A DNA stretch of 64,000 bases, taken from the NCBI RefSeq assembly GCF_000737315.1, contig NZ_JMCB01000001.1, positions 124,001 through 188,000 on the forward strand, given 5' to 3'. Shown piece by piece: positions 42,763 to 59,261 of the stretch (positions are counted from its first letter, which is position 1; every line of letters begins with the position of its first letter). Source of the stretch: Hyalangium minutum. Its GTDB lineage: Bacteria; Myxococcota; Myxococcia; Myxococcales; Myxococcaceae. The translations under genes were made by a program, and so were the position numbers. The notes under the pieces were generated by a model that saw nothing but the letters and a program-made list of their open reading frames with translations, was not told the origin of the DNA and searched no databases.

Positions 42763-42838
42763 GGGGGGGCCTTTGGTGTTGGGGGCGCTTCATAACACCT
42801 CTTGCAGGCCTCTTTCACCTGCCCCCTCCCCCACTCAT

Positions 42839-44128
42839 ATGACCACCATGAGCACAGCCCCCGCCAATTCCTCCGCAGATCTGATCCACGGAGGGACGAC
42901 TGATACGAAATACCAGACGCCGCAGCGGCGCCTGATGGAGCAGGCCTTCAACCGCGCATTGCAGGCAGGTAAGCGGCTGGTCGTGCGCATCGAGGCCCCC
43001 TGGTCTGACGAGTGCGTCACCTACGAGGAGAGCCTCCCCCAGCACGGCGCGCGGCTCAATGAGCTGCTGTCCAAGGTGGAGTCGCTGGTGCTCAACGAGG
43101 CCGACTTCGATCGCGCGCATGGAGTGGACTACCTGCCCTCGGAGATGCTGCACTTCCAGACCGTCTACTTCTGTGATCCGGCCACCCGCACCTGGGCCAT
43201 CGTCCCACACGTGACGAGCGCGCAGCTCTTCACCCAGTACCTCACCCTGTGGCTGGAGCGGCCCCAGTTCCCCCAGACGCTCCAGCAGCTGGCGCTCGAG
43301 GCCACCACGCCGGAGACGGCGGTGGGCATCCCCTTCAAGCACCTGGTGGAAACGGCCATCCAGACGGCCGGCTACAGCCTCAGCTTCGAGGAGACGCGGG
43401 CACTCGTGGAGAAGCTCCGGGAGAAGAAGGCGAAGCAGCCGGACCTCTTCCAAGGCATTGATCTCGACGCCCTGTACATGCGGGGAAGCCAGAACCAGAT
43501 CAGCGCGGGGCGCATCACCTACGAGGAGCTGTCCGCAAAGGATCCGCAGCTGGGCAAGCGCATGTTCGACTCGCTGGAGAACATGATCGAGGCGCGCCTG
43601 TACAACGTGATCGGCGTGCTGCTCCGCAAGCAAGGGCTGGAGGCAGCGGCGCGCCAGGTGCCCGCGCTGCTCGAGACGGTCCACAAGGACATGGCGGCCA
43701 AGGGGCTCACCCACGAGGGCGAGGTGGCGGACACCGGCATCGTCCGGGCGAAGAACGAGGCGGCCTTCAAGGTGCTCGAGGCCCGCGCGGGGTTGATCAC
43801 CCGCGAGCAGGCGGTGAAGTTCAACGAGCAGCTCATCGCGCAGAACGTGCCCTTCTACTTCCGCGAGTCGGTGCCCCACATCTTCGTGGCGCTCGGGGAC
43901 TACGCGACGGCCGCCTCCCTCATTGAGGCGACCCTGCCAGAGTGGGGCATGTTCTACGACGGCCTCATCGCGCACATGCGCTCGCAGACGAAGTCCAAGG
44001 ACAGCAAGGACGAGAAGATGGTGCAGATGTTCGGCAACAAGCTGGCCATCTTCGAGAAGCTGAAGGTCCGCGTGATCAACGCGCGCAGGGCCCGGGCCGA
44101 GAGCCTGAGGAAGCTCGCCTCCTCCTGA
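42839..44128 (+). CDS. hypothetical protein; N-terminal thioredoxin-like fold with WSxxC, helical C-terminal region
   Basis: ALQAGKRLVVRIEAPWSDEC aligns by eye with the A..EGKPVLVDF.A.WCxxC pattern; HGVDYLP resembles the YGV..LP cis-Pro strand. Codon usage is that of a real gene. Start at 42839 or 42848. Confidence 0.6.
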   Translation: MTTMSTAPANSSADLIHGGTTDTKYQTPQRRLMEQAFNRALQAGKRLVVRIEAPWSDECVTYEESLPQHGARLNELLSKVESLVLNEADFDRAHGVDYLPSEMLHFQTVYFCDPATRTWAIVPHVTSAQLFTQYLTLWLERPQFPQTLQQLALEATTPETAVGIPFKHLVETAIQTAGYSLSFEETRALVEKLREKKAKQPDLFQGIDLDALYMRGSQNQISAGRITYEELSAKDPQLGKRMFDSLENMIEARLYNVIGVLLRKQGLEAAARQVPALLETVHKDMAAKGLTHEGEVADTGIVRAKNEAAFKVLEARAGLITREQAVKFNEQLIAQNVPFYFRESVPHIFVALGDYATAASLIEATLPEWGMFYDGLIAHMRSQTKSKDSKDEKMVQMFGNKLAIFEKLKVRVINARRARAESLRKLASS

Positions 44129-44212: not shown

Positions 44213-47200
44213 TCAGCGGCCGCGCAGGGCCTCCTTCACGTGCTCCGCCATCGTGAGCGCGAAGGGGCGCCGCGGCAGGCTGAAGTGGTTGGCTCCCGGC
44301 ACATCCCTCGTCACCACCTCTCCCTTGAGGTAGGAGCGCCATCCCAGGATGTCGTCGCCGTAGTTATCGGTGAGCATTGTGGGCACCGTGGAGCGCACGA
44401 AGAGGACCCGCCCATCGTAGGGCTGGGCTTGGTAGCGCTCCCACACCGCCACGTGGTGCCGTACCAGCTTCTTGAGGTTCTCCATCTCTGGCTGCCGCGT
44501 GCTGAGCAGGGGCGACTGCTCATCCAGGATCTGCCCCAGCACGGAGTTGCGCTTGGCGAAGGCCAGCAGGCGCCGCTCCATCCAGTCAGAGAAGCCCGAC
44601 GCCTTCTCGCCCCGCTTCGCCCGCTCCGCGCGCCGTGAGGCGAGCCGCACGAACATGTCGTCCATCGCATACGGGGCGAAGCCGCCCCAGATCTCGATGA
44701 AGCTGCGGATCTTGCGGTACATCAGCCGCAAGGGGCTGTGGCCGCTCCAGCGATCATTGGCGAAGGGGGCATCCAGCAGCGCCAGCAGCTCCACCTTCTG
44801 CGAGGCGGCGCGAAGCTGCTGCGCCATCTCGAAGGCCACCATGCCGCCGAAGCAGTAGCCGCCCAGGTAATACGGCCCCTCGGGCTGGACGGTGCGAATG
44901 GCCTGGACGTAGCTCGCCGCCATATCGCGCACGTCCGCTTGGGTCTTGCTCAGATCGGTGATGGCGGGATCCTGGATCGCGTAGACGGGCCGCTCCTTGC
45001 CCACCTGCTGCGCGAAGTCGACCAGGGCAAACGCCACTCCACCCGCGCCGTGCACGCAGAAGAAGGGCGAGCCATTGCCCGCCTTCTGGATGGGGACGAG
45101 CGCGCTGGCGGAGGCTCCCGCGGGGACGATGTCCGCCCGCGCGCTCACGAGCAGAGCCAGCGTGGCCGCCGTGGGAGCCTCGAAGAAGCCCATCAGCGGG
45201 AAAGTACAGCCGAAGGTGTCCTGGACCTCTTTGATCAAGGTGATGGCGGACAGAGAGTTGCCACCCAGCTCGAAGTAGTTGTCCCCCACACCCACCGGGC
45301 GAAGGCTCAGCTGGGCCTCCAACATCTGGACGATCTTCCGCTCCACGTCATTGCGCGGGGCCACGTACGGCTCGGCCATCTCGGGGCGCACGGCCTCGGG
45401 CGGAGGCAGGGCCTTGCGGTCGAGCTTGCCGTTGGGCGTCAGTGGCAGCGTGTCGAGCACGATGAAGTGGGAGGGGACCATGTGCGCCGGCAGCCTCGCG
45501 CCCACCCACTCCCTCAACATGGAGGGCAGCTTGCCTGTGGAGAGGGCCCGCTTGGGGAAGCGGCAGTACTGCTCGGGCGCACCCAGCGTCCCGTATCGGT
45601 CCGGACGGAAGGAGGACGGAACCTGGCCCGCCTTCTCCCGGTAGAACTGCGCGTCGAAGCCACCGGGCGCATCGCCCACAGACCAGCAGATCGCCACACG
45701 CCACCCGTGACGGGCGGCCAGCTCGCGCACCGCCTCCGGGTGCAGCCCCGGCTGGCCCTGGGCCTCCTGGGGCAGGCGCGCATTGGGAATCCCGCGCACG
45801 AGGAAGGCGGGCTCGGAGGACTCCTTCGCCAGCTTCTCCAGCGCGGCCATGTCCACGGGCTGGGTGGCCCAGTCGCGCACCGGCTGCTGCGCGAGGAAGG
45901 CGGGCTGGGACTGAACCTGGAGGAAGGCGTCGTAGCGGAAGCGGGTGAACTCGTTCTCGCTGCGGCCCTCGCGCAGCTCCACGCGCACGCGATCCACCTG
46001 CGGGAACGTCCCCGCCAGAGCGTGGAAGAACTCGGGGCTGATCACCAGCTCCTTCTCGTTGAGCAGCGCCACCTCCAGCCTGCGCGCCAGCTCCTCCTGG
46101 GAGAACGGCTTGGCGGCGCGGTGCCGCAGGATGTCCGCGTGGAACACCTCCTGGAGGTGCGCGTTGCGGATGTCGCCCATGAAGAGCACGCCGCCGGGAG
46201 CCAGCAAGTCCAGCGCCTGGCGAATGACGGACAGGAAGTACTCGGCGTCCGGGAAGTACTGCACCACCGAGTTGAGGATCACGAGGTCATACTCGTGGCT
46301 CCCCAGGCCGGACAGCTGGTTGGCCTCGCGCTGGAGCACGCGGGCGTTGCTCAGCCCCTCCTTCTCAAAGCGGGCCTGCAGGTGATCCACGGCGCTCTGA
46401 GAGAAGTCCAAGCCGGTGTACTGCTCACAGCGCTTGCTGAGCGGCAACGCCAGGAGTCCCAGGCCGCTGCCGATCTCCAGGACGCGGCGCGGGGAGAGCG
46501 CGAACAGCCGCTGGAGCGTGGTATCGGCCCACTCCCGCATCTCCGCTTCCGGCACCAACTGGCCCGTGTAGCTGCTGCGGTAGCCGGCGAACGGGTTGTC
46601 GCGGCTCTCGATGACGGCCTGCCGGCCGCCGCCCTCGTGCAGGTAGGCCTCGTTGAACAACCCCTGCCAGTCTGTGGACTCCGCGCGGCCCACCACCTCC
46701 GCGGGCACCACGTAGCAGATCAGCCGCGAATCCTGGTTCGCGTCCTCGTCCTTGATGACCACGGCTTCGGAGACGGCCGGGTGCTGGCGCAGCGTGTTCT
46801 CGATCTCGCCAGGCTCGATGCGGTAGCCGCGGATCTTCACCTGGTGATCCACGCGCCCCAGGTACTCGAGGTTGCCGTCCGCGTGCATGCGGACGCGATC
46901 CCCGGTCCGGTACCAGCCCTGCACGAACTTCTCCTGGTTGAGCTCCGGCCGGTTGAGGTAGCCACGGGCCACCCCCACCCCACCGATCCACAGCTCCCCC
47001 ACCTCGCCAGCCGGCACGGGCTGGCCCGACTCATCGGCGACCTTCAGCTCGGTGTTGTCGATCGGCTTGCCAATCAGCATCGCCTCAGAGTGGAGATCCA
47101 CCAGCCACCCGGTGGAGTAGATGGTGGTCTCGGTGGGGCCGTACCAGTTCCAAACGCGCTTGCCGCGGGACAGCAGCTGCTCGGCCAGCTCGCGAGAGAG

Positions 47201-48094
47201 AGGCTCGCCGCCAGTGCAGATGGTGAGGTTGGAGCGGCTCTTCCACCCGAGCTTGAGCAGCATCTTCCAGCCCGAGGCCGTGGACTGCGCGTAGGTGGCC
47301 GAGCTGCGCTCCAGGAGCGCGGCGAACCGCTCCCCATCCTTGAGCTCGTTGCGATCGGCCACCCACGTGGTGCCGCCCACCAGCAGCGCCAGGTGCAGCT
47401 CCGCCGCCGCGATGTCGAAGCAGATCGACGCGGTGGCCAGATAGGTATCCGTGGGCCCCATGCCCGTCAGCCGGTGGACGGAGAGCAGCAGGTTGGTGAG
47501 GGAGCGGTGCTCGATCTGCGCCCCCTTGGGCCTGCCCGTGGAGCCCGACGTGTAGAGCACGTAGGCGCGATCCGTGGGCCGCGGGCCGTCCTGCCGGGAC
47601 ACGGGCGGCGCCGCGGCGATGGCGGCGGCATCCCGATCGACGCAGATGGCCTCCGTGCCATCTCCGAGCAGCTCGCCCAGCAGCGCCTCCTCGGTGATGA
47701 CCAGCCGGATCCCCGCGTCCTTCCAGATGTAGCGCAGGTGCTCCGGCGGGTAGTCCGGATCCATGGGCACGTACGAGCCCCCGGACAGCATCACGCCCAG
47801 GGTGGCGGCCACCATGTCGTTGGAGCGGCGCAGCAGGATGCCCACGGGCGTCTCGCGAGTGACGCCACGGGACCGGAGGTAGCCCGCCAGCCGGCAGACC
47901 CGCTCCCTCAGCTCCGCATACGTCCACGCGCGCGACCCGTCCCGGAGAGCGCAGTCCTGGGGCGTCCGCTCCGCCTGCTCACAGAACAGATCACACGCCG
48001 TCCGCTGAAGACGGGAGTGCTCCTCCGGCCCAAATGCCGACTGCGCGGCCACCACCGACGAGCTCACCTGCCGAGCAACACTGGTTCCCTGCAT
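44213..48094 (-). CDS. stand-alone NRPS-like protein: A domain interrupted by N-methyltransferase, PCP, thioesterase with Cys nucleophile; no C domain
   Basis: A motifs YTSGSTGRPKG, FDI, GGE, NWYGPTE, YRTGD, GRVDHQVKIRGYRIE; inserted MT LEIGSGLG and ILNSVVQYFP; A10 PNGKLDR; PCP FELGGNSL; TE GYCFGG..D..NHF. Confidence 0.93.
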   Translation of the reverse strand: MQGTSVARQVSSSVVAAQSAFGPEEHSRLQRTACDLFCEQAERTPQDCALRDGSRAWTYAELRERVCRLAGYLRSRGVTRETPVGILLRRSNDMVAATLGVMLSGGSYVPMDPDYPPEHLRYIWKDAGIRLVITEEALLGELLGDGTEAICVDRDAAAIAAAPPVSRQDGPRPTDRAYVLYTSGSTGRPKGAQIEHRSLTNLLLSVHRLTGMGPTDTYLATASICFDIAAAELHLALLVGGTTWVADRNELKDGERFAALLERSSATYAQSTASGWKMLLKLGWKSRSNLTICTGGEPLSRELAEQLLSRGKRVWNWYGPTETTIYSTGWLVDLHSEAMLIGKPIDNTELKVADESGQPVPAGEVGELWIGGVGVARGYLNRPELNQEKFVQGWYRTGDRVRMHADGNLEYLGRVDHQVKIRGYRIEPGEIENTLRQHPAVSEAVVIKDEDANQDSRLICYVVPAEVVGRAESTDWQGLFNEAYLHEGGGRQAVIESRDNPFAGYRSSYTGQLVPEAEMREWADTTLQRLFALSPRRVLEIGSGLGLLALPLSKRCEQYTGLDFSQSAVDHLQARFEKEGLSNARVLQREANQLSGLGSHEYDLVILNSVVQYFPDAEYFLSVIRQALDLLAPGGVLFMGDIRNAHLQEVFHADILRHRAAKPFSQEELARRLEVALLNEKELVISPEFFHALAGTFPQVDRVRVELREGRSENEFTRFRYDAFLQVQSQPAFLAQQPVRDWATQPVDMAALEKLAKESSEPAFLVRGIPNARLPQEAQGQPGLHPEAVRELAARHGWRVAICWSVGDAPGGFDAQFYREKAGQVPSSFRPDRYGTLGAPEQYCRFPKRALSTGKLPSMLREWVGARLPAHMVPSHFIVLDTLPLTPNGKLDRKALPPPEAVRPEMAEPYVAPRNDVERKIVQMLEAQLSLRPVGVGDNYFELGGNSLSAITLIKEVQDTFGCTFPLMGFFEAPTAATLALLVSARADIVPAGASASALVPIQKAGNGSPFFCVHGAGGVAFALVDFAQQVGKERPVYAIQDPAITDLSKTQADVRDMAASYVQAIRTVQPEGPYYLGGYCFGGMVAFEMAQQLRAASQKVELLALLDAPFANDRWSGHSPLRLMYRKIRSFIEIWGGFAPYAMDDMFVRLASRRAERAKRGEKASGFSDWMERRLLAFAKRNSVLGQILDEQSPLLSTRQPEMENLKKLVRHHVAVWERYQAQPYDGRVLFVRSTVPTMLTDNYGDDILGWRSYLKGEVVTRDVPGANHFSLPRRPFALTMAEHVKEALRGR

Positions 48095-48148: not shown

Positions 48149-48598
48149 TCAGCCCGCCGCGCGAGCGGCACCCTCGGCCCGAGCCTTGAGCGCCTGGTTC
48201 ATCGCCTCGAAGCTCTTGCGGGCGCCCTCTTGAACCTGCGCGCCCATGAGCGCCGAGAGCGGGCCGGTGAAGATCTCACGGTTGACGAACACCGCCTCAC
48301 GGGCGCCCTTCGGCTCCACCGTGCAGCTGTGCCGGCTGACCAGCAACCAGCCATTCAACACCTTACTCTCCCACTCCAGCTCGCGGCCCGGCGTCACCTG
48401 GACGATCTTCGGCCGAAAGCTCCGCACCGTCCGGGGATCCATCTGCACGGTGATCTCCAACGGCTTGCCCACCACCATCTCTCCCTGGGCCTGGCGCAGG
48501 AAAGGGTTCCACTCGGCGAACGCCTTGAAATCCGTCAGGATGCTCCAGACCTGCTCGGCCGGTGCCTGGATATGGATCTCGGTGCGAATCTCTTTCAC
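48149..48598 (-). CDS. SRPBCC/START-like (polyketide cyclase 2 family) lipid-binding protein
   Basis: GTG start with GGAG RBS; IHIQAPAEQVWSILTDF...EWNP; C-terminal helix FEAMNQALKARAE. Confidence 0.85.
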   Translation of the reverse strand: MKEIRTEIHIQAPAEQVWSILTDFKAFAEWNPFLRQAQGEMVVGKPLEITVQMDPRTVRSFRPKIVQVTPGRELEWESKVLNGWLLVSRHSCTVEPKGAREAVFVNREIFTGPLSALMGAQVQEGARKSFEAMNQALKARAEGAARAAG

Positions 48599-48775
48599 GA
48601 GGAACTCCTAAAGAGGGGCAGTTCGAACCAACGGCCCGTCATATATCCCGTCCCCCTGGACTCATGCAAACCTGGAAAGGCTCGCATCTCCGGAGAGCCT
48701 CTCGCCGTGGTTTGCGCGCCCGTGATAGCGTGTTGATCAGTCCCCAAGAGGGGACAACCTTTTCACGGAGAAACA

Positions 48776-50098
48776 ATGTCGGACGAAGGTGAGATCCCCC
48801 GCGGCAAGATGCGTCGGCTCGGGCGCATGCTGACGCTTCCAGGACGTGCAGGCACGCAGCTGGTCTCGGCAGGCCTGCAGAAAGTGCTCGGCAAAGCAGT
48901 GGACCCGGGCCGCGCCGCCGCCTCGCGAGTGATGGAAGTGCTTGGGGAGATGAAGGGCATCCCCGTCAAGGCCGGCCAGCTGATGACCCTCTTTGGCGAC
49001 AACCTGCCCGAGGAGGCCCGCAAGACGCTGGGCCAGCTGTTCGCCAAGACCCCCACGCTGCCTTTTCCGCAGGTGCGCCACGCCCTGGAGACCGAGCTGG
49101 GCAAGTCCCTGAGCGAGGTCTTCGAATCCTTCGAAGAGACGCCCTGCGCTGGTGCCTCGCTCGGCCAGGTGCACCGCGCCCGGCTGCACTCCGGCGAGAA
49201 GGTGGCCGTCAAGGTCCAATACCCCGGCATCGCTGGCGCCATGCAGGAGGATCTCGAGCTGATCCGGCCCATCGTGAAGACCCTGGGCATGGCCGGCAGC
49301 CTCCTCGACACGAAAGAATACTACGAGGAGATGAAGCGCGATCTGGCCGACGAGCTCAACTACAAGCAGGAGCTGGCCAGCCTCGAGCAGTTCCGCACCT
49401 ACCTGTCCCACTGGCCTGAGCTGGTGGTGCCGCGCAGCTTCCCCGAGTTCAGCACCAGCCGGGTGCTGGTGCTCGAGTGGCTCGAGGGGCCCACCCTGCA
49501 CTCCTGGCTGGAGTCGCCTCACCCCGAGAGCGAGCGCCTCGCCCTGGCCGAGAAGCTGGTGCGCGCCGTCTACGGCCCCTTCCTGCTCCACCGCGTGGTG
49601 CACGGCGACACCCACCCCGGCAACTTCCTGGTGCTGGAGGGCGGCAAGCTGGGCGTGCTCGACTTCGGCGCCATCAAGCCCCTCTCCGAGCCCTTCTGGC
49701 ATGCCGTGGTCTCCGTCATGCAGGGCATGCTGGAGAATCGCAAGGTGGACATCGTCCCCCTGGTGCGGCAGGCCGGCTTCCGCCTCGACATGCCCGAGGA
49801 GCGCGCGCGCACCCTCGTCGAGCGCATCCACGAGCTCATCTCCAGCCCCTTCAAGGGGCCCTATGACTTCGGCAGTGATCAGCTCATCGCCGGCTTCACG
49901 GAGCTCAAGAAGAAGTACCCGCTGGATCTGCTCCGCGTCAGGCCTCCGGCGGAGGGGCTGCTCTTCTACCGGGCCATTGGCGGGCTGAGCCAGAACCTGC
50001 GCCGCCTCCAGATCAAGGGCGACTTCCGCCCCTTCTTCCGCGAGGCGCTCGCCGCTCCCCACCACGTCGAACTGGCACGCGCGCGCCGCTTGGGCTGA
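48776..50098 (+). CDS. UbiB/ABC1/AarF atypical protein-kinase-like protein (copy 2)
   Basis: MKG..VKAGQ (KxGQ), AGASLGQVHRA, VAVKVQYPGI, ELNYKQE, HGDTHPGN, LDFG. Confidence 0.93.
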   Translation: MSDEGEIPRGKMRRLGRMLTLPGRAGTQLVSAGLQKVLGKAVDPGRAAASRVMEVLGEMKGIPVKAGQLMTLFGDNLPEEARKTLGQLFAKTPTLPFPQVRHALETELGKSLSEVFESFEETPCAGASLGQVHRARLHSGEKVAVKVQYPGIAGAMQEDLELIRPIVKTLGMAGSLLDTKEYYEEMKRDLADELNYKQELASLEQFRTYLSHWPELVVPRSFPEFSTSRVLVLEWLEGPTLHSWLESPHPESERLALAEKLVRAVYGPFLLHRVVHGDTHPGNFLVLEGGKLGVLDFGAIKPLSEPFWHAVVSVMQGMLENRKVDIVPLVRQAGFRLDMPEERARTLVERIHELISSPFKGPYDFGSDQLIAGFTELKKKYPLDLLRVRPPAEGLLFYRAIGGLSQNLRRLQIKGDFRPFFREALAAPHHVELARARRLG

Positions 50099-50116
50099 GC
50101 GGAGGACGGTGGGGAC

Positions 50117-50170
50117 GGGCCCCTGACGCCAGGGCCTGAGGGATTGGAGCCACTGACGCCCGGTGGCTTC
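50117..50170. terminator. two tandem imperfect hairpins between convergent genes
   Basis: gggcccctgacgccagggcc (50117-50136) and ggagccactgacgcccggtggcttc (50146-50170). Confidence 0.45.
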
Positions 50171-50780
50171 AGTCCTCCACCAGCGGAACGATCCCGAACT
50201 GCTGCCGGAGCTTTTTCAGATCCTCCCCCAGCATGTTCTCCAAGGGCTGCTCGATCAGGCAGACCGCCTTCCTGCCCTGCTCAAGCCCCCACTCCTCGGC
50301 GTGACGCAGCCGAGCTCTGCGGCTGGGGTTGACGACCGCGTAGGCTCTCCTGGCGAAGCGGTACACCCGGCTGCCGGTCTCGGAATATCCCTGCGAATGA
50401 TAGAAGGCATAGGTCCCGAGCTCTCCGACCGTCGTCGCGTCGCACCCCAGGAGGGTATGGAACATGTCGTGCGTTCTCGTCACCCGGGTGGAGAGAGGGA
50501 ACCGGGCGTAGAGCCCGGCCAGTTGAGGCGTCAGATTGACGGTCCCGAGGTTGTAGCGCCGCATGAAGTCGGAATACGCGCGGCCAAAAGTCCCCTTCGG
50601 CATGGCCGCCAATTCGGCCATGTCCACGCGTTTCAAATTGAGATCCATGAAGCCTTTGACCCTCTCACGGATGACGGGGTTCTCATGAGGCTCGGACGCC
50701 ACAGCCTTGAGCACGGCGACATCTCCCATGCGCTTCTCGTGCAGTGCCAAGATCATCGCCGCGAGGACATCCACCTTCAT
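50169..50780 (-). CDS. Coq4-family metalloprotein (copy A)
   Basis: ATG at 50780 with AGGAG RBS, overlapping the upstream SDR stop (ATGA). L..MPKGTFGRAY..FM and HDMFH-x11-E (HDMFHTLLGCDATTVGE), the Coq4 metal-binding motif. Confidence 0.85.
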   Translation of the reverse strand: MKVDVLAAMILALHEKRMGDVAVLKAVASEPHENPVIRERVKGFMDLNLKRVDMAELAAMPKGTFGRAYSDFMRRYNLGTVNLTPQLAGLYARFPLSTRVTRTHDMFHTLLGCDATTVGELGTYAFYHSQGYSETGSRVYRFARRAYAVVNPSRRARLRHAEEWGLEQGRKAVCLIEQPLENMLGEDLKKLRQQFGIVPLVED

Positions 50781-51694
50781 CTGGGCTCTCCTGTGCTCAC
50801 TTTCACCCTCTCCATCGCCGAGGGTGACATGCTCACTCCCGTCACACGCTCCGAGTACTCCCAGAGCTTGCGCGCTGTCTCGACATCGTACGAGCTCTTG
50901 CTCGAGCGCTCTTCCTGGCACTTGCGCCAGATCCCGCCAAAGTACTTGCCGCTCACGCCCTCCAGCTCCGGGGCTGACGCGGCCCAGACCTGCGTCACCG
51001 CGCCTTCCTCGGGCGTCAGAAACCCGAGCGACCTGACCGCCATGAGCATCGCCACGGCCGGCAGCAGGAAGACCGCGCCGGAGTTGGCGTTGATGCTGGT
51101 GGCGGCCGCCCCGGGATGGACGCAGTTGGCCGTCACGCCAGTTCCCTCCAGCCGCCGTGCCAGCTCGTAGGTGAACAGGACGTTGCACAGCTTGGAATGG
51201 GCGTACGACTTGAGCATGCTGTAGCCGCGCTCAAGCTGGAGATTGTCGAAGTCCAGGGCGTACTGCCCGTGCTTATAGGACGAGACGTTGACGATGCGGG
51301 AAGGAGCCCCCGCCCGGAGCGCCTCCAGCAATTGGAGCGTCAGGGCGAAGTGGCCCAGGTGGTTCACGCCCAACACCATCTCGAACCCGTCCACCGTCGT
51401 CCGCCGCTCGGGCAGCGCCAGGCCAGCGTTGTTGACCAGCGCATGGAGCCGGTCATACCGCGCGCTGAACTGCTCGACGAAGGAGCGGATGGAGGCCAGC
51501 GAGGCGAGATCGCAGAGCATCAGCTCCACCTCCCTGTTTCCAGAGCGGCCCCGCACCTCGTCCCGCGCGGCCTCACCTCGGGCCTTGTCACGGCACACCA
51601 TCACCACCCGGGCCCCTTGCCGCGCCAACGCCAACGCCGTCGCGCGCCCCAGCCCCGCATTGGCCCCCGTGATCAAACAAATCTTGTCTTGCAT
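50777..51694 (-). CDS. short-chain dehydrogenase/reductase, retinol-dehydrogenase/WWOX-like (copy A)
   Basis: ATG at 51694; ITGANAGLG, CDLASLASI, LVNNAG, NHLGHF, IVNVSS, YAHSK, VHPG. Confidence 0.92.
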   Translation of the reverse strand: MQDKICLITGANAGLGRATALALARQGARVVMVCRDKARGEAARDEVRGRSGNREVELMLCDLASLASIRSFVEQFSARYDRLHALVNNAGLALPERRTTVDGFEMVLGVNHLGHFALTLQLLEALRAGAPSRIVNVSSYKHGQYALDFDNLQLERGYSMLKSYAHSKLCNVLFTYELARRLEGTGVTANCVHPGAAATSINANSGAVFLLPAVAMLMAVRSLGFLTPEEGAVTQVWAASAPELEGVSGKYFGGIWRKCQEERSSKSSYDVETARKLWEYSERVTGVSMSPSAMERVKVSTGEPR

Positions 51695-51713
51695 CCCAGC
51701 CCCCACAAACGGC

Positions 51714-52373
51714 CTACCGGAAGAGGCTCGCGATCGCCGCTGGCAGCCCCGTGGGGCTCGCCCGGAAGTAGATGTCCAGGTGATCGTCATCCGTCCGGAC
51801 GGCCCGCAGCCCCACAACGGGGTTGATCGTCGCCAGGAAGCGGCGGATGCCCGGGTTGTTGGCAAAGTCAGGGCTCTTCAACAAGTCGAAGCACACCCGA
51901 TCATCTTGGGCCTCGACCAGGGTGGGGGGGCGCTCGGGCAGGTGCACCAGCAGGTTGGCCGGCTTGGTGAAGTCGAGCTCCCCCGACTTGATCTTCGCGA
52001 TGACCGGAGAGGTGCCGTCACCCTCGTCGAGGATCTCGGCCTTCATCTCCGAGACACGGAACTCCAAGCGCACCTCGTCCTTGTTGATGCGCAGATCATC
52101 CAGCGCGACCACGAGCGAAGCGCGGAGCAGCGAGGAGCCCAGGGCATCGAGTGTCGTGGTGAGCTTCAATCCCGGGGGCGCGGGCGAGATGATGACGTCC
52201 TTCTTGTGCCCCTGCCCCGAGACGAACGTACGGGCCAGGTAGCGCGGCACGGCCAGGGGGATGCCCAGCCGCAGCTTCATCATCCCTCGGATGGCCCGGG
52301 GAACCTCTTCTGGGTGCTCCTTGAGATACTCCTTCACCGCGAGGAAGAGCGTTTTGGCGTTCGGCTTGCTCAT
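51714..52373 (-). CDS. hypothetical protein (219 aa)
   Basis: Co-oriented ORF filling the gap between the two SDR genes; ATG at 52373; no recognisable motif. Confidence 0.65.
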   Translation of the reverse strand: MSKPNAKTLFLAVKEYLKEHPEEVPRAIRGMMKLRLGIPLAVPRYLARTFVSGQGHKKDVIISPAPPGLKLTTTLDALGSSLLRASLVVALDDLRINKDEVRLEFRVSEMKAEILDEGDGTSPVIAKIKSGELDFTKPANLLVHLPERPPTLVEAQDDRVCFDLLKSPDFANNPGIRRFLATINPVVGLRAVRTDDDHLDIYFRASPTGLPAAIASLFR

Positions 52374-52440
52374 GGCTTGTGGCGACTTCCCTTCAGGCAA
52401 TGGGTGACGGTGCGGAGCCCAGGCCCCGGCCTCGGCGGGC

Positions 52441-53313
52441 TCAGGGCAGGGACACGCCGGTGAGCTGTTCGGACTCCTGCCATAGCTTGAGCGCCAGCGC
52501 CTCATCGTACGTAGCGGGGCTGGAGCGCTCCTCCTGGCATTTGCGGAAGACGCCTCCAAAGTACTTCCCGCTCACCCCGTCGAGCTCCGGCGCGCTCGCG
52601 GCCCAGATCTGGGTGTGGGCGCCCCACTCGGGGGTGGCCAGGCCGAACGCCCGCAGCGTCAGGGCCAGCCCAATGAAGGGGAGCATGGCAATGGAGCCGG
52701 AGTTGCTCCCCATGCTGGTCGCGGCCCCTCCCGGGTGCACACAGTTGGTGGTCACCTTCGTGCCACGCAGGCGGCGCGCAAGCTCGTAGGTGAAGAGCAC
52801 ATTGCACAGCTTCGACCGGGAGTACGCCTTCATCATGCCGTAGCCGCGCTCCAGCTGGAGATCATTGAAGTCCAGCGGGTACTGGCCGTGCTTGAAGGAA
52901 GAGACGTTGACGATGCGGGAGGGCTGGCCGGCCTTGAGCGCGTCCAGCAGCAGCAGCGTCAGCGCGAAGTGGCCCAGGTGGTTGACCCCGAAGACCATCT
53001 CGAAGCCGTCCCCCGTCTGGGCCCGCTTGGGGAGCGTGACGCCGGCATTGTTCACGAGGACATGCAGCTGGGAGTACTTCGCCTTGAACTGCTCGACGAA
53101 GGAGCGAATCGAGGCGAGCGAAGCCAGATCGCAGAGCATCAGCTCCACCGCGTCGTTGCCCGTCCGGCCCCGGATCTCGTCCCGGGCTGCCGCTCCCCGC
53201 TCGCGGTCGCGGCTCATCACCACCACCGTGGCGCCCTTCGCCGCGAGCGCCATCGCCGTGGCCCGCCCCAATCCGGCGTTCGCCCCGGTGACAATACACA
53301 CTTTGCCTTCCAT
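52441..53313 (-). CDS. short-chain dehydrogenase/reductase, retinol-dehydrogenase/WWOX-like (copy B)
   Basis: VTGANAGLG, CDLASLASI, LVNNAG, NHLGHF, YSRSK, VHPG; close paralog of 50777-51694. Confidence 0.93.
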   Translation of the reverse strand: MEGKVCIVTGANAGLGRATAMALAAKGATVVVMSRDRERGAAARDEIRGRTGNDAVELMLCDLASLASIRSFVEQFKAKYSQLHVLVNNAGVTLPKRAQTGDGFEMVFGVNHLGHFALTLLLLDALKAGQPSRIVNVSSFKHGQYPLDFNDLQLERGYGMMKAYSRSKLCNVLFTYELARRLRGTKVTTNCVHPGGAATSMGSNSGSIAMLPFIGLALTLRAFGLATPEWGAHTQIWAASAPELDGVSGKYFGGVFRKCQEERSSPATYDEALALKLWQESEQLTGVSLP

Positions 53314-53479
53314 GATTCTGGAGTCCTAGGAGTCTGGTAGGGGGTCAGGCGTCCAAGGAGACCAGCCGATCTGGTGCATTGCGCGTCTGTGCGCGTCCCC
53401 GGCACCACCTTGGGCTCGGGGGAGGCCAGATCGATGATCCAGTCGCCTCCCCCTCGCTACTGAATCCGGAACACAATGA

Positions 53480-54187
53480 TCAGGCGTAGATGCTGGGGCC
53501 CGTGCCGTGGCGCCAGAACTGCGGCTTGATATCGGGGATGCCCAGCTCGCGGCGAACATCGTCGATGGGACGCTCCCACATGTCCTCGAACTTCAGATCG
53601 CACATGAACCGGACGGTCTTGCCCAGCTTGAAGCCCAAGTCCCAGCCCGCCTGCAGCTCCTTGGCCCGATCCGGCTTGAGCAGCTTGTAGACGTGGAAGC
53701 CCGCCTTGAACAACGGGACGATCTCGGGCGGCAGGCTGCAGTTCTGCGCCTCGGCGAACGCCGTCACGCTGTACTCACCCGGCATGGTCGTTTCGAAGCC
53801 CAGCAGCAGGTGATACATGTCGTGCATGGCCGTGAAGCGCACGGCGAAGGTGTTGCGCTTGAACACCTCCTGCAGGTAGTGGTCGTCGTCGCTGATCTCG
53901 AAGGGGTTCAGCTTGTTGTCGTCGAGGAACCGCATGTACTCGCGGCCGAGCGTCCCGTCGGGCATCTGGCGCAGCGCACCCCGGTCCACCTTCGGCAGGT
54001 AGCCCCGCACTGCCTCCAGGCGCTTCTGGATCTCCGGGGGGCCGATGTAGTCCATGGCGTCCAGCTTGTAGATCTGGAAGTCACCAAAGCGGCTTGGATC
54101 ATTCGATGTCTGGAGCGCAAGCAAGAGCGACTTCGGCCGAATGGTCCGGCGCGGCAACAATGAACGATTCTCCAAGATCGACAGCAT
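53480..54187 (-). CDS. Coq4-family metalloprotein (copy B)
   Basis: GAGGAG RBS; LRQMPDGTLGREY..FL and HDMYH-x11-E (HDMYHLLLGFETTMPGE); FEDMWERPIDDVRRELGI. Confidence 0.87.
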   Translation of the reverse strand: MLSILENRSLLPRRTIRPKSLLLALQTSNDPSRFGDFQIYKLDAMDYIGPPEIQKRLEAVRGYLPKVDRGALRQMPDGTLGREYMRFLDDNKLNPFEISDDDHYLQEVFKRNTFAVRFTAMHDMYHLLLGFETTMPGEYSVTAFAEAQNCSLPPEIVPLFKAGFHVYKLLKPDRAKELQAGWDLGFKLGKTVRFMCDLKFEDMWERPIDDVRRELGIPDIKPQFWRHGTGPSIYA

Positions 54188-54333: not shown

Positions 54334-55101
54334 TCAGGTGCCCTGCGCCCCCCCCGAAAGCGCTCGGATCAGCTCATCCGCATAGCGAGGCCCTTCCTGG
54401 AACAGGAAGAAGTGGCCGCCTGGGAAGACTCTAGCGGAGAACACCTGCTGCGTCTCCTCGCGCCAGGCCTCCAGGGCTGGCTCGGGGGTGTCGGGGTCAT
54501 CCTTCCCCCCCCAAGCGGTGAGGGGGCAGCCAAGGGGAGGCTCGGGGGTGTACCGGTAGCGCTCGAACATCGCGAAGTCGTTGCGAAGCACCGGGGTCAG
54601 CATTTCCATCATCTCTCGGTGGGCAAGCACCTCTGGAGGGCTGCCGCCGAGTTTGCGCACCTCCTCGCGGAAGGGCTCGTCGGGCAGCGCACTCAATGGA
54701 CGCGGAATGGGGCGAACCCGAGGGGCGGGAGAACCCGAGACGATCAGGTGCGCGGGCCCTGGAAGCTGGAGCTGCCGTAGCCGCCGCGCCAGTTCGAAGG
54801 CCACCAGCGCTCCGAGGCTGTGCCCGAAGAGCGCCAGCGGGACATCCATCAGCGGGCGCAGCGCGGGGAGCAGCGCGTCGATCAGCGCAGTGGCGGAGTC
54901 AATCCGCTTGTCGCCCCAGCGGCTCCCGCGGCCCGGAGCATCCACCGCGCACAGCTCGACGTGAGGGGGCATCCGGGCAGCCCAGCTGTTGAAGGTAGCG
55001 GCACCGCCCCCCGCGTGGGGGAAACACACCACGCGCAAGGAGGCTCGGGCTTGGGGCCGGCGGAAGGGAAACCACCGCTGTGGCTGGGACGCAGTGCTCA
55101 C
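54334..55101 (-). CDS. type II thioesterase (second copy)
   Basis: GTG at 55101 with AGGAG 8 nt upstream (alternative ATGs at 55131/55170); VVCFPHAGGG, PGRGSR, LFGHSLGALVAFE, PGGHFF. Confidence 0.9.
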   Translation of the reverse strand: MSTASQPQRWFPFRRPQARASLRVVCFPHAGGGAATFNSWAARMPPHVELCAVDAPGRGSRWGDKRIDSATALIDALLPALRPLMDVPLALFGHSLGALVAFELARRLRQLQLPGPAHLIVSGSPAPRVRPIPRPLSALPDEPFREEVRKLGGSPPEVLAHREMMEMLTPVLRNDFAMFERYRYTPEPPLGCPLTAWGGKDDPDTPEPALEAWREETQQVFSARVFPGGHFFLFQEGPRYADELIRALSGGAQGT

Positions 55102-55190: not shown

Positions 55191-55514
55191 TCAGCGGGAG
55201 TTCTTCAAGCTCCCCACCGTCAGCCCCGTCATCTGAGGTGCCACGCGGTTGATGCCATCCCCGGAGGAGCGCGCCAGCGTCTGCGCGGGAGCTCCCGCAC
55301 GGGCCGGTGCTGTGCCCTTGCCGCCTGGAGAGCCCCGGAGCAGCTCGCGGACCCGGTTCCAGCGGGCCTTCTCGTCGGCCAGCAGGCGGGCCAGTTCGTC
55401 GCGCGCCGCCGGGTCCTGGAGCCCACTGGCCGCCGCCGCCACCTTGTCGAGGAACGGCATCAGGTAGCCAAAGTCCCTGTCGAACGCGTCCGGATTCGCC
55501 ACATGCACCTCCAC
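55191..55514 (-). CDS. small hypothetical protein (107 aa)
   Basis: Last co-oriented ORF of the 55.2-59.9 kb cassette; GTG start just after an in-frame TAG; amphipathic helical N-half. Confidence 0.5.
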   Translation of the reverse strand: MEVHVANPDAFDRDFGYLMPFLDKVAAAASGLQDPAARDELARLLADEKARWNRVRELLRGSPGGKGTAPARAGAPAQTLARSSGDGINRVAPQMTGLTVGSLKNSR

Positions 55515-55567
55515 CGGGAAAACGGCGCCACCCTACCCCATTGCCGCGCGCGCGCCCAAGCGAAGCC

Positions 55568-57061
55568 TCAGCCGTTGTCATCCAGCTCACCCGGGATGGC
55601 CACCCCCTCCGGGTTGTAGACAGTGTGCGGCCCCACCTCCTTGAGGAGAGCCTTCATCCAGTCGGGGATGGTACCGATGGTCGCGGGAGCCAGGGCCCTG
55701 CGCACATAGGTCCAGTCGGTCCGCCCGTTGTCGAGCGAGCTCACCACCAGCAGGGGCTCTCCCACGGAGACAGGACCGAGGTCTACCAGGCGCTTGGCTC
55801 GCGGGGTTTCCTCCTGCATCAACACCTTCGCCAGGTCTCCCCGAGGGCTGTAGAACACCCACCACGCCACGGTCCGGAAGGTCTTCGCCTCTTGCTCGGG
55901 GGTGCCTGGAGTCTCCGGCGGATTCCAGTCTGGGAGCGAGCGCAGCGCGTACTGACACCGAGCAATGGTGTAGTTGGCCGTCTCTTCGGCGCCCCACATC
56001 CGCAGCAGGCGGCTCATGAAGACGAGGCCCTCGGGCACTTCCAGATCCTTCTCTTCGATGCGCACCTTCTTCTTGGTCTTGGCGGAGAATGGCAGCTTGG
56101 CCACGAAGAGCCGCGCCAGGCCATACGGGCGCGTCTTCTTCATCCGATCGATCCCCGATTGGAGCTGCGCATCGGACCGGGCTGCGGGAGTCCCCAGACC
56201 TCCGTACCGGCCTCCTATTTTCGGATCCGTCTTGGAGCCGGGGATGAAGCTGCGCACCAGCAACGAGCCTTCATTGTCGTAGTTGCCGCTGTAGTCCCAC
56301 TTGGGAGCGCAGGAAGGCGCGGGCCTCGGAGCATCCTGGGCTGCCCCGGTGTCGAAGAGCTGTGCCTGCTTCTTCCCGTCGGTATCCACGCGCAGGATGC
56401 TCACCACGTGGGAGCCCTTCTGCTTGGTGCCGTCCGGATCGCGCCCCACCCAGCTGTAGCAAGAGCCCTGCTGGAGCGGGTGCGAGGCCTTCATGGCATC
56501 CGCGAACCTCAGGGGGCCGCCTTTGTCCCAGTGGCCACCCTCGGACGTGAAGACCTTGAGCCCGTCATTGCCGTCGCAGTCGATGCCGACGCCGTTGACG
56601 TAGGACATGCCATAGCCACGGGACAGCACCGTGTACGACACCAGCATCTGGCACGCGCAGCAGACAGCGACGAAGGGCTGCGCGCCCTCGCTGAAGCTCT
56701 TGTAGATGTCCTGGATGGGAACGGCGTTGCCCGTCTCGACGTCCGGACCGTCATAAGCGGTGCCCAGCAGCAGCTCGCTGATGCCCCGGGCCCACTGCTC
56801 CTCGAGCAGCGGCCGCCCCGACTTGAGGATCTTCAGCTGCATCGGGTGGGCGTCTGGATCGTAGATGTTCCACTGCTTGTTCCACAGGTTCCAGTACTCC
56901 CCCGCACACCACAGCCCATCCAAGGGGAGGTTCATCCGGAAGGCGATCATCTTCAGCACTTCCGCCGCCCCTTGATCACGTGGCTTGGGGATCTTGTCGA
57001 CGTTGATGAGTTCGACGAGGCGGGGGAAGCCCTTGCGCTCGGGGGCTGCGGTGGATGCCAT
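55568..57061 (-). CDS. hypothetical protein; putative papain-like Cys-His-Asp hydrolase (effector candidate)
   Basis: ACQML (Cys at helix start), GSHVVSILRV (His at strand start), QLFDTG (Asp) in papain-fold order; starts 4 nt after the upstream stop. Confidence 0.55.
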   Translation of the reverse strand: MASTAAPERKGFPRLVELINVDKIPKPRDQGAAEVLKMIAFRMNLPLDGLWCAGEYWNLWNKQWNIYDPDAHPMQLKILKSGRPLLEEQWARGISELLLGTAYDGPDVETGNAVPIQDIYKSFSEGAQPFVAVCCACQMLVSYTVLSRGYGMSYVNGVGIDCDGNDGLKVFTSEGGHWDKGGPLRFADAMKASHPLQQGSCYSWVGRDPDGTKQKGSHVVSILRVDTDGKKQAQLFDTGAAQDAPRPAPSCAPKWDYSGNYDNEGSLLVRSFIPGSKTDPKIGGRYGGLGTPAARSDAQLQSGIDRMKKTRPYGLARLFVAKLPFSAKTKKKVRIEEKDLEVPEGLVFMSRLLRMWGAEETANYTIARCQYALRSLPDWNPPETPGTPEQEAKTFRTVAWWVFYSPRGDLAKVLMQEETPRAKRLVDLGPVSVGEPLLVVSSLDNGRTDWTYVRRALAPATIGTIPDWMKALLKEVGPHTVYNPEGVAIPGELDDNG

Positions 57062-57065
57062 GTGC

Positions 57066-58580
57066 CTATGCCTCCTGGGCCTCGAGCCCCTCGCGGTGCA
57101 CGCGATCGACGGCCTGCGCGAACGGCTCGCCCTCCGCTTCGGGATGATCCGCCAGGAAGTGCTGCCGGTTCTCCTCGGGGTCTTTCGAGGTGTAACCCAG
57201 GTTGTGCAGCTGGCGCTCCGTGTCGGGCGTCTCCTGCTCCTCGGTGCCCAGGTAGATCACCCGCGAGTAGAGGTAGCGAGGCTCCTCCGTCCCCGGCGCG
57301 CTGGCCTTGCCCTGGACGTGCTCGGAGGTGGGGTAAGCGCCCCACTCGAGCTCGCAGGCGCCCCCCGCGTAGACGTTCTGCTCGATCAGAAGCCCTTCGG
57401 CCGAGGCCCGGCCCTCGCGCACCTGCGAGCCCACCGTCAGACGGTAGGGCGCTCCAGACTCCCGCTCCACCGGGTCGTCGCTCTCGGGGTTGGCCCCCAT
57501 GCGCCGGCCGTGGTGATCCATGAGGTACAGCGACACCGTCTCCCGCACGCCCTCGCACGGCGAGCCCCGCGCCAGCCGGTCATAGAAGGCACACGCGAAG
57601 GTCCTCCCGCCCGTCAGGTGCTCGCGCTGCGCTCCCCGCGGGTTGCGGCGCGCCTCTCCATCCGGCCAGAACTTCGCCTTGCAGCCCGCGGGGCCCTCGC
57701 TGACGGTGGGACAGGGCCACTGCTCCGGGGTGATGTTCAGCGCGGGGTCGAACATGTAGATGACCACGCGCCGGTTGGGCATGTTCGCCGCGTCGCGCTC
57801 GGCCTTGCGCGCGGGCTTCTGGTATTCGGCGGCGGCCTGCTCCGAGAAGACGCGCACGGGGTTGAACTCGCCGCAGCCCTGGTAGGCACACTTGCCTCCG
57901 GCGCTGGGGCCTCGCGAGAGGAAGTCCTCCGGCACGTACTGGAAGGGGACACCCTGCTCGTCCACGCAGAGCGCGTCCATGTACGCGAGGAAGAGCTTGG
58001 CGCGCGTGCCTCCGTCCGGGAACCCCGTCCCGGGCAGGCCGTTGTCTTGCTGGAAGGCCTTCACGGCCTTCGTCGTGGGATTGTCCAGGTAGCCCGTGGG
58101 CGCCGCCTGCAGGTAACCCAGCTGCGTCAACATCATCTGGATCTGCCGGGTGCCCCACTTGTCCCCTCCGTGCGGGGAGCTGTAGAGCTTCTCCCAGAGC
58201 GCCACGTCACGGGTGAGCAGGCCGTAGACGGAAGTGGCCCGGCGGCCGGCCAGCACTTTGTTGTACTCGTCCTGGCCCGAGGGGTCGGCGTGGCCGAACA
58301 CGCTCAGCAGCAGCGCCTTGCCTGTGTCGTCCGGGCCAGGCGGGCGCTGGCGGGCCAGCAGCTGGAACTCGTGCGTGCCGGCAGGCAACAGGAACGACGA
58401 GTCAAAGTCGAACCGCAGATCATCGATGCGCCAGCACGCCGAGGGGCGGAGCCGGGGCCGGAGCGTGCTGTACGCCTCCTTGTCCGTGGGCGCCACCACG
58501 TAGGGAATGGGGGCCTCGCCGTGCTTGGCGGCGGTGCCCCCATCCGAGATCAGCGCGCCTTCCATCAAGTTCCTGGCCAT
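57066..58580 (-). CDS. OmpA-C-like domain protein with inserted peptidoglycan-binding (PG_binding_1) domain
   Basis: LRFDFDSS, FGHADPSGQDEYNKVLAGRRATSV and distal NRRVVI (OmpA-C); between them IQMMLTQLGY...TTKAVKAFQQDNGLPGTG (PG_binding_1); C-terminal QLHNLGY. Confidence 0.8.
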   Translation of the reverse strand: MARNLMEGALISDGGTAAKHGEAPIPYVVAPTDKEAYSTLRPRLRPSACWRIDDLRFDFDSSFLLPAGTHEFQLLARQRPPGPDDTGKALLLSVFGHADPSGQDEYNKVLAGRRATSVYGLLTRDVALWEKLYSSPHGGDKWGTRQIQMMLTQLGYLQAAPTGYLDNPTTKAVKAFQQDNGLPGTGFPDGGTRAKLFLAYMDALCVDEQGVPFQYVPEDFLSRGPSAGGKCAYQGCGEFNPVRVFSEQAAAEYQKPARKAERDAANMPNRRVVIYMFDPALNITPEQWPCPTVSEGPAGCKAKFWPDGEARRNPRGAQREHLTGGRTFACAFYDRLARGSPCEGVRETVSLYLMDHHGRRMGANPESDDPVERESGAPYRLTVGSQVREGRASAEGLLIEQNVYAGGACELEWGAYPTSEHVQGKASAPGTEEPRYLYSRVIYLGTEEQETPDTERQLHNLGYTSKDPEENRQHFLADHPEAEGEPFAQAVDRVHREGLEAQEA

Positions 58581-58595
58581 GGTGAGTCCTCGCGG

Positions 58596-59231
58596 CTAGG
58601 AGCCGTGCTCCGTGGCGAGCTGCTCCGCGATCCCCGAGTCCAGCGCCCCTGTGACATCCAGGCCGTTCTCGTGCTGGAACAACTCGAGCGCGAAGCGGGT
58701 CCACTCCATCGTGTCCGGGTTCAGGTACCGGGGATCGTCCGCCGGATAGCCGAGGTTGCTGAGCCGCCCCGCCAGCCCCGTGGGCTCCGGCAGCGGATCC
58801 AGGCCGCCAATGGCCAGATCGAACACCAGATCCCCCACCTCCAGCGTGCCGCTCGTCGCGGTCTTGTCCACCGAGGCCTGAACGTAGCCATCCCCGTCCG
58901 TCGTCAGCTCCTCGGAGTAATGCCCCACCTTCAGCACGCACGGTGCATCGGGGATGGGCTCGCCGCGCAGGTCCAGCACCCGCAGGCGCAGCTGGAGCTT
59001 TCCGGTGTGCACGGTGAGCTTGTGCTTCTTCCCGGTTGCCAGCGTGAAGCGCGCGGGCGGGAGCTCGGGGATCCACACCTCGTCATCGGGCAGCAGCATC
59101 AGCGGGCTCGCGCGGCTCTGCCGGAGCTGCGCGTTCTGGGAGTCGTTCCAGATCGTCTCGAAGTTCTCGAAGCCATACGCCGAGGCGATGCTCGCCAGAT
59201 GCTCGCCCTGTTTGACCTTATGGATGGGCAT
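58596..59231 (-). CDS. LysM + transthyretin-like beta-sandwich + PG_binding_1 protein
   Basis: HKVKQGEHLASIASAYG...LLPDDEVWIP (LysM); LRVLDLRGEPIPDAPC....TTDGDG; RLSNLGY...LFQHENGLDVTG.LD. Confidence 0.8.
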   Translation of the reverse strand: MPIHKVKQGEHLASIASAYGFENFETIWNDSQNAQLRQSRASPLMLLPDDEVWIPELPPARFTLATGKKHKLTVHTGKLQLRLRVLDLRGEPIPDAPCVLKVGHYSEELTTDGDGYVQASVDKTATSGTLEVGDLVFDLAIGGLDPLPEPTGLAGRLSNLGYPADDPRYLNPDTMEWTRFALELFQHENGLDVTGALDSGIAEQLATEHGS

Positions 59232-59261
59232 GGCGCTCCCTCGGGCCCGGGCCGTGCGATG

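Follow-up and report, generated by a model that had tools for sequence, protein, structure and literature searches.

Coq4, UbiB, SRPBCC and SDR genes in a lineage-specific combination between thiotemplate genes of Hyalangium minutum

What might two Coq4 proteins, a UbiB-type ATPase, an SRPBCC protein and two SDRs do among the thiotemplate genes of a myxobacterium whose order makes menaquinone and not ubiquinone? The question is raised by positions 48149-54187 of a 64,000-nucleotide stretch of DNA (the window) from Hyalangium minutum DSM 14724 (contig JMCB01000001.1, assembly GCA_000737315.1; window position w is record position 124000+w). An earlier interpretation made from the letters and reading frames (the sequence-only reading) described a 'CoQ-synthome-like' cassette, after the enzymes of coenzyme Q (CoQ) synthesis, repurposed inside a polyketide synthase (PKS)/nonribosomal peptide synthetase (NRPS) cluster. 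We found known families brought together in a new, lineage-specific combination that is unique in the databases searched. In our best explanation, which we hold tentatively and at a little under an even chance, these are accessory genes that modify and chaperone a lipophilic product made by the thiotemplate enzymes next to them. Since the G+C content of the window is ~65-72%, reading frames were picked by third-position G+C (GC3) and then checked against Pfam. The span holds seven genes rather than six (lengths in amino acids, aa):

48149-48598, minus strand: SRPBCC / Bet v1-fold protein, 149 aa (PF10604, 67.6 bits)
48776-50098, plus strand: UbiB1, an ABC1/UbiB ATPase, 440 aa (PF03109, E 5e-60)
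50169-50780, minus strand: Coq4a, 203 aa (PF05019, 59.3 bits)
50777-51694, minus strand: SDR1, 305 aa (PF00106, E 8.6e-34)
51714-52373, minus strand: unk218, 219 aa, an uncharacterised family without a Pfam or NCBIfam match
52441-53313, minus strand: SDR2, 290 aa, a paralog of SDR1 (71% identical)
53480-54187, minus strand: Coq4b, 235 aa (PF05019, 74.3 bits)

The family assignments of the sequence-only reading all hold at the Pfam level and every gene it named is present, but it had missed unk218 between the two SDRs. Catalytic and metal-binding motifs are intact across the set. The minus-strand genes form a string in the order TEII_b (a type II thioesterase), Coq4b, SDR2, unk218, SDR1 and Coq4a, in which unk218 and SDR1 are separated by 19 bp and the start of Coq4a overlaps the stop of SDR1 by 4 bp. 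UbiB1 is convergent with Coq4a and divergent from the SRPBCC gene, which shares the strand of the NRPS gene and precedes it by 54 bp. The set is thus bracketed by thiotemplate genes, the NRPS gene (44213-48094) on one side and TEII_b (54334-55101) on the other, and this bracketing is the main argument by which we assign it to the cluster.

Both Coq4 proteins contain the HDxxH-x11-E metal motif, which had been noticed earlier and is present as HDMFHTLLGCDATTVGE and HDMYHLLLGFETTMPGE, in the form HDMFH-x11-E in Coq4a and HDMYH-x11-E in Coq4b. A 17-sequence alignment of the Coq4 family shows no variation at H122, D123, H126 or E138, and both proteins score above the PF05019 gathering cutoff of 22.9 bits. 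Their genes are 2.7 kb apart, and the proteins are just 27% identical, a pairing that we take to be more than chance. Two bacterial structures of the Coq4 fold have been solved, 6E12 (Alr8543 with bound oleic acid and Mg) and 3MSQ (Npun02000094), and each of the two Hyalangium proteins matches both by sequence; for Coq4a against 6e12, the E value is 1.5e-6. When the AlphaFold (AF2) model of Coq4b (pLDDT 86) was compared with the PDB by Foldseek, only 6e12 and 3msq were significant (probability 1.00; TM-scores 0.57-0.68 depending on normalisation). Coq4b is therefore predicted by its model to have the Coq4 fold, with lipid- and metal-binding proteins as its sole structural relatives.

The closest known proteins to Coq4a and Coq4b are eukaryotic COQ4, Alr8543 and Npun02000094, all of which belong to PF05019 and have in common the invariant HDxxH-x11-E motif and an all-helical fold; in the solved homolog 6E12, a lipid is bound next to the metal site (PMC10680789). 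The differences are that Coq4a and Coq4b are just 25-28% identical to the plasmid-borne cyanobacterial homologs, including Alr8543, and that eukaryotic COQ4 works in the CoQ pathway whereas Coq4a and Coq4b have no CoQ-pathway partners in the window. Hyalangium also has two diverged Coq4 paralogs, each paired with an SDR, unlike eukaryotic COQ4 or the 6E12 and 3MSQ homologs. According to previous studies, the role of COQ4 as an oxidative decarboxylase (C1) is based on genetics only, and in vitro activity was never obtained (PMC10680789). We also considered cyanobacterial Coq4 as the plastoquinone C1 hydroxylase and rejected it, as this step is assigned to PlqH and not to Coq4 (PMC12998194); bacterial Coq4 proteins therefore stay without an assigned function. 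The gene surroundings of Alr8543 on plasmid pCC7120delta were uninformative.

A UbiB gene beside the Coq4 genes and a second one at 41.4 kb had both been proposed, and both are clear members of PF03109 (E 5e-60 for UbiB1 and 1.4e-73 for UbiB2). The two proteins are 30% identical and keep the KxGQ, VAVK, DxHPGN and DFG motifs (KAGQ, VAVK, DTHPGN and DFG in UbiB1). ABC1 proteins are general lipid-homeostasis ATPases. No transmembrane segment is predicted in UbiB1 or UbiB2, as no 19-residue hydropathy window reaches 1.6, which makes the CoQ analogy looser. The best PDB matches of UbiB1 are 7cy2 and 5yjz (MSMEG_1954 and Rv3197/MABP-1; 153 and 149 bits), and its scores against COQ8A/B (105-112 bits) are lower than those against these mycobacterial macrolide-binding ABC1 ATPases. 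MABP-1 and MSMEG_1954 resemble UbiB1 in having an ABC1 domain with KxGQ, the catalytic Lys and Asp, a length of ~440 aa and no predicted transmembrane segment. UbiB1 nevertheless scores below every equivalog cutoff, that is, 185.5 bits against 487.6 for the UbiB equivalog TIGR01982, 136 against 667 for PRK04750, and 161 against 800 for the MABP-1 model, its second-best NCBIfam model; these models were scored for UbiB1, not for UbiB2. E. coli UbiB has a C-terminal membrane anchor and a ubiquinone pathway, neither of which is seen for the Hyalangium UbiBs in the window. MABP-1 is known to bind macrolides and to give inducible macrolide resistance (PMC6208485, PMC8696161), and one paper reports that COQ8 delivers insoluble CoQ intermediates (PMC13418538).

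The SRPBCC protein, earlier described as SRPBCC/START and Coq10-like, does belong to the SRPBCC proteins but is not demonstrably of COQ10 type. It matches PF10604 (Polyketide_cyc2) far above the partial match to PF03364 (30.5 bits), it has no predicted transmembrane segment, and no PDB sequence matches it better than E 0.009. Judged by these scores, it is a superfamily member that is not assignable to COQ10. The two SDRs had been called retinol-dehydrogenase-like, and this description is accurate: both contain TGxxxGxG, NNAG and the Ser-Tyr-Lys triad (NVSS and YxxxK motifs in SDR1) and are classical SDRs of the PRK06197 / retinol-dehydrogenase-like group, with NF004846 scores at the cutoff of 268 for SDR2 (268.3 bits) and just under it for SDR1 (262.1 bits). 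At 71% identity, they are recent duplicates. SDR1 contains one hydrophobic segment (residues 205-227), and the best PDB match of SDR2 is 3rd5 (E 1.4e-40).

The seventh protein, unk218, matched no Pfam or NCBIfam model and a word-based homolog search for it was empty, but a full HMMER search found 199 representative relatives (E<=1e-3), showing that it is not an orphan; the family has at least 561 confirmed metagenomic matches. The neighbourhoods of 80 metagenomic loci were scanned with a 10-sequence alignment, a 30-sequence version being too diverse for patterns. Relatives of unk218 precede a Ser/Thr kinase in 29 of the 80 loci, follow a PlsC-type acyltransferase in 14 (an acyl-AMP ligase is also present in some of these) and follow a generic SDR in 12. 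These SDR neighbours are ~27% identical to SDR2, so that, by sequence, the SDR-unk218 pairing appears to recur at the superfamily level only. A distant AMP-binding ligase (~25% identical), not an NRPS, occurs in three loci and a KS domain in none (0/80), and one relative forms the C-terminal part of a fusion with an AMP-binding enzyme. Because the relatives adjoin acyl-activating and acyltransferase genes, the unk218 family is probably lipid-associated. A single-sequence AlphaFold prediction of unk218 was unusable (pLDDT 36).

How far does the analogy with CoQ synthesis go? In agreement with the sequence-only reading, none of the called genes in the window contains a UbiA, UbiE/G-type or Ubi/Coq hydroxylase domain that scores above its cutoff; the methyltransferase of the NRPS gives a generic Ubie_methyltran match just below cutoff (19.8 vs 20.1 bits). 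The ring methyltransferases and hydroxylases that are partners of COQ4, COQ8 and COQ10 in the CoQ synthome were not found among the window genes, nor was any CoQ-pathway association of Coq4a or Coq4b (UbiA/COQ2, COQ3/5/6/7 or Ubi enzymes). The label 'CoQ-synthome-like' therefore fits the families as named but is loose, given the equivalog scores of UbiB1, its higher scores against the mycobacterial ATPases than against COQ8, the absence of predicted transmembrane segments from both UbiBs and an SRPBCC protein not assignable to COQ10.

The thiotemplate genes and their neighbours in the window are as follows:

1-34989, plus strand (TEII_a minus): trans-AT PKS genes PKS1, PKS2 and PKS3, then a luciferase-like monooxygenase (LLM), AT-ER and TEII_a
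1-7308, plus strand: PKS1, truncated by the window, first in-window start codon at 40 (domain profiles)
30801-31880, plus strand: LLM
31579-34203, plus strand: longest open reading frame of AT-ER
34210-34989, minus strand: TEII_a, a type II thioesterase, 45% identical to TEII_b
35040-39488, minus strand: MacB/LolCDE-type exporter, comprising LolA_like, two FtsX/MacB_PCD permeases and an ABC ATPase
41434-42762, minus strand: UbiB2, an ABC1 ATPase, 442 aa (PF03109, E 1.4e-73)
44213-48094, minus strand: NRPS, A(methyltransferase-interrupted)-PCP-thioesterase, without a C domain (profiles, PDB alignments)
54334-55101, minus strand: TEII_b, a type II thioesterase that heads the Coq4/SDR string (PF00975, E 1e-47)

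The PKS is of the trans-AT type, as indicated by KS domains without a cis AT, RhiE-like linkers and a separate AT-ER gene. PKS1 is 2520 aa long and starts 254 bp upstream of the window; before it comes a 4685-aa PKS that has a MaoC-dehydratase match, and no loading module is seen in the stretch read there (record positions 121329-131308). The assembly line thus comprises at least 15,010 aa, and a large lipophilic product is expected from it. PKS3 ends in its own thioesterase (TE) and is followed by LLM, AT-ER and TEII_a. We note that the longest reading frame of AT-ER overlaps the LLM gene by ~300 bp; as the AT domain begins at residue 120, the true start of AT-ER is probably near 31880. The Lol-like exporter of the sequence-only reading is real at the domain level. 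Beyond it lie an unknown gene, a YitT-like membrane protein, UbiB2 and an unknown plus-strand gene, then the NRPS. Both UbiB genes are interleaved with NRPS and exporter genes, UbiB2 being the one beside the exporter. The earlier placement of the set inside a PKS/NRPS cluster is thus upheld by the bracketing, but the link is one of position, and the PKS is a trans-AT line with a TE of its own.

With its own TE and no C domain, the NRPS cannot be one of the modules that make up the PKS line. A methyltransferase interrupts its A domain in the C-terminal part, as in PDB 5wmm. The A domain retains Asp235 (FDIAAAE), so that the substrate is probably an amino acid, and alignment with LgrA gives a partial specificity code of D235, I236, A239, T278, W299 and W301. 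An NRPS-like enzyme for aryl-keto acids (a quinone-forming A-T-TE enzyme) was rejected as a candidate on account of Asp235 and the 5wmm-like methyltransferase interruption.

The set is not confined to one isolate. A 10.4-kb contig from an independent run (SRR31724269) has 96.5% DNA identity and keeps the genes from unk211 to UbiB1 in the order of the window, and every gene on it is intact, with dN/dS between 0.00 and 0.37 (Coq4a 0.08, unk218 0.10, SDRs 0.11-0.17, Coq4b 0.37). The genes on this sister-strain contig are under purifying selection. Translational coupling of SDR1 and Coq4a is not conserved, since a 22-bp gap replaces the 4-bp overlap in the sister strain. SDR1 has 296 aa there, compared with 305 aa in the window.

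Beyond these two strains, near relatives are scarce. Of 5.8 billion clustered proteins, none is more than 45% identical to Coq4b; Coq4a has a single close relative (78% identity), which is on a 974-bp contig (GCA_015689235.1), and a metagenome scan with Coq4a alone yielded no relative. The set would therefore not seem, from these protein searches, to be a widespread myxobacterial housekeeping module, and the wide occurrence in myxobacteria without PKS genes that would have spoken against the sequence-only reading is not seen. To place the Coq4 proteins, genomes were scanned with patterns from the Coq4 alignment and the best 80 relatives of Coq4b were evaluated; the source genome was not among the matches listed, and the patterns do not match Coq4a itself. 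These relatives come mostly from Cyanobacteria, which are without ubiquinone, with few from Myxococcota, and identities are 33-41% for the group with P450-Coq4 pairs or tandem genes. A P450 gene is immediately upstream of Coq4 in 33 of the 80 loci, 15 have a UbiA prenyltransferase gene at most a few kb away, six have a TetR regulator, and diverged Coq4 paralogs stand in tandem in nine, with three in a row in locus L078. Like the Hyalangium set, the cyanobacterial P450-Coq4 pairs couple Coq4 to a redox enzyme and include tandem diverged paralogs; unlike it, they have a P450 and not an SDR as the partner and are without NRPS, PKS and SRPBCC genes. In one further Coq4 locus, on a plasmid of Synechococcus PCC 7502, the neighbours include genes of the NTF2 family and P450, methyltransferase and TetR genes.

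If the set serves a thiotemplate product as we favour, its parts may work as follows. Either the large trans-AT PKS or the small NRPS would supply the substrate. Both SDRs, which depend on NAD(P), would perform carbonyl/alcohol redox steps, one hydrophobic helix per SDR acting as a lid or a membrane anchor. The Coq4-fold metal proteins may hold the lipid tail in a hydrophobic tunnel, as 6E12 holds oleic acid near Mg, while the head group is modified; oxidative decarboxylation is one possible head-group chemistry, suggested solely by the example of eukaryotic COQ4. Binding and chaperoning of the hydrophobic product may fall to the ABC1 ATPases and the SRPBCC protein, either for delivery to the exporter or for protection of the producer, in the manner of MABP-1 with macrolides or COQ8 with CoQ intermediates. 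The decarboxylation, membrane complex and hand-over to the exporter of the sequence-only reading are pure inference. The families, the thiotemplate position and the limited distribution support its tailoring interpretation, but comparative genomics provides no PKS link and the CoQ analogy is loose. A stronger form of this explanation, in which bacterial proteins of the Coq4 fold would truly tailor lipophilic polyketides or lipopeptides, for example as metal-dependent (oxidative) decarboxylases or by modifying head groups, each with a dedicated SDR and served by ABC1 and SRPBCC chaperones, so that CoQ-synthome logic is re-used without ubiquinone, seems to us distinctly improbable.

A precedent exists in the disorazol trans-AT PKS/NRPS cluster of Sorangium cellulosum So ce12, where orf9, annotated as Coq4, lies between disC and disD (PMC9712229). 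A Coq4 gene in a myxobacterial trans-AT cluster is therefore not new. As in Hyalangium, orf9 follows a TE-terminated synthase, the likeness being one of annotation; unlike the Hyalangium set, it is a single gene for which no SDR, UbiB or SRPBCC partners are reported. Deletion of orf9 reduced a promoter-boosted disorazol yield from ~7-fold to ~2.5-fold, and the gene is non-essential (PMC4753468). By analogy, this yield effect may lend slight support to a helper role. The precedent weakens the earlier suggestion that Coq4 proteins as natural-product tailoring enzymes would be new, while the present gene combination remains lineage-specific.

Several observations count against our preferred explanation of accessory genes for a thiotemplate product. 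The sequence-only reading had looked to an enrichment of Coq4 homologs beside PKS genes, and this was not found: by tblastn and phmmer, no KS, A domain, TE, SRPBCC or similar SDR gene lies within 10 kb in any of the 80 best Coq4b loci (0/80), a UbiB gene occurs in one and a distant SDR in two. Likewise, Coq4, UbiB, SRPBCC and PKS genes are never beside unk218 relatives in the 80 metagenomic loci. Co-localisation with PKS/NRPS genes is thus not conserved across independent genomes, and the thiotemplate link is one of position in one species, represented by two close strains. Within the window, the G+C content of the set (0.655) is like that of the flanking EF-G and DEAD-helicase genes, compared with 0.69-0.72 for the PKS; the PKS has its own TE, with LLM and AT-ER directly after it, 14 kb from the set; and the NRPS is a separate TE-terminated enzyme beside it. 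Promoter and terminator scans gave fewer matches than shuffled sequence and were uninformative on operon structure. Finally, disorazol orf9 is dispensable (PMC4753468), and no Coq4 protein has a known in vitro activity (PMC10680789).

The arrangement of the two TE-terminated enzymes invites a reading, unlikely in our judgement but deserving some weight, in which the set belongs to a separate small pathway around the NRPS A(methyltransferase)-PCP-TE, the SRPBCC protein and TEII_b. This pathway would make or modify an N-methyl-amino-acid-derived lipid or small molecule and would abut the PKS cluster while leaving the PKS product untouched. The PKS ends in its own TE and has TEII_a, LLM and AT-ER directly downstream, the NRPS is no module of it, the SRPBCC gene is probably co-transcribed with the NRPS across the 54-bp gap, a second type II thioesterase heads the Coq4/SDR string, and unk218 relatives associate with acyl-AMP ligases and acyltransferases. 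However, the exporter and UbiB2 between the PKS and the NRPS suggest interleaved halves and not a clean separation, the window shows no evident gene for a partner substrate, fatty-acyl or otherwise, and nothing comparable was found elsewhere. To a similar degree unlikely is a module for primary or stress lipids or an isoprenoid quinone (for example, menaquinone or another membrane lipid) that stands beside the cluster by accident. Relatives of every component do occur without PKS or NRPS genes (Coq4 with P450, UbiA and TetR; unk218 with the kinase, PlsC and SDR), and the G+C similarity to the EF-G and helicase genes and the general lipid-homeostasis role of ABC1 proteins are consistent with this; but a housekeeping module would hardly be absent from other myxobacteria in the protein search, would not be expected between an NRPS and a type II thioesterase, and should have a prenyltransferase or quinone methyltransferase nearby, which is not the case.

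The mycobacterial likeness of the ABC1 ATPases suggests a further division of labour, to which we give a rather small probability: they, and perhaps the SRPBCC protein, may mainly help in self-protection or export by binding the completed polyketide as MABP-1 binds macrolides, with the Coq4 and SDR proteins unrelated to product chemistry. The higher scores of UbiB1 against MSMEG_1954 and Rv3197 than against COQ8, the rank of MABP-1 as its second-best NCBIfam model, the lack of predicted transmembrane segments in both UbiBs, the position of UbiB2 adjoining the exporter genes and the inducible macrolide resistance from MABP-1 (PMC6208485, PMC8696161) all point this way. On the other side, 161 bits is far under the MABP-1 model cutoff, binding specificity is unreadable from sequence, and the duplicated Coq4/SDR pairs are left unexplained.

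The choice among these explanations matters beyond this locus. We know of no bacterial Coq4-family protein with a demonstrated function, and the present case could yield a natural substrate for the Coq4 fold; it could also tell whether polyketide producers use ABC1 ATPases to chaperone or detoxify these compounds. If the genes are merely adjacent, the finding shrinks to an unusual lineage-specific string of lipid-handling genes. No description of this Hyalangium cluster was found in the literature.

A few other genes of the window are worth recording. The 365-aa protein at 39510-40607 (minus strand) has only a weak porin-like match, and the 455-aa protein at 42761-44128 (plus strand) only a weak thioredoxin-like match. 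Five co-directional genes at 55191-59921 (minus strand), mostly without a family, lie between TEII_b and a SnoaL_2 gene and encode proteins of 219, 211, 504 (OmpA-like and PG_binding_1), 497 and 103 aa. Four of the five are whole in the sister strain, with dN/dS of 0.07-0.15; the 219-aa gene is a contig-edge fragment there and was not scored. The SnoaL_2 / NTF2-like protein (120 aa, 59997-60359, minus strand) is at the far end of the minus-strand run and adjoins the gene for a full-length EF-G paralog with five EF-G domains (60453-62687, plus strand), directly followed by a DEAD-box helicase gene (62688-63998, plus strand). No ribosomal-protein operon is in view around the EF-G paralog, which may serve as a resistant target against a product that inhibits translation, or may simply be one of the EF-G paralogs usual in myxobacteria.

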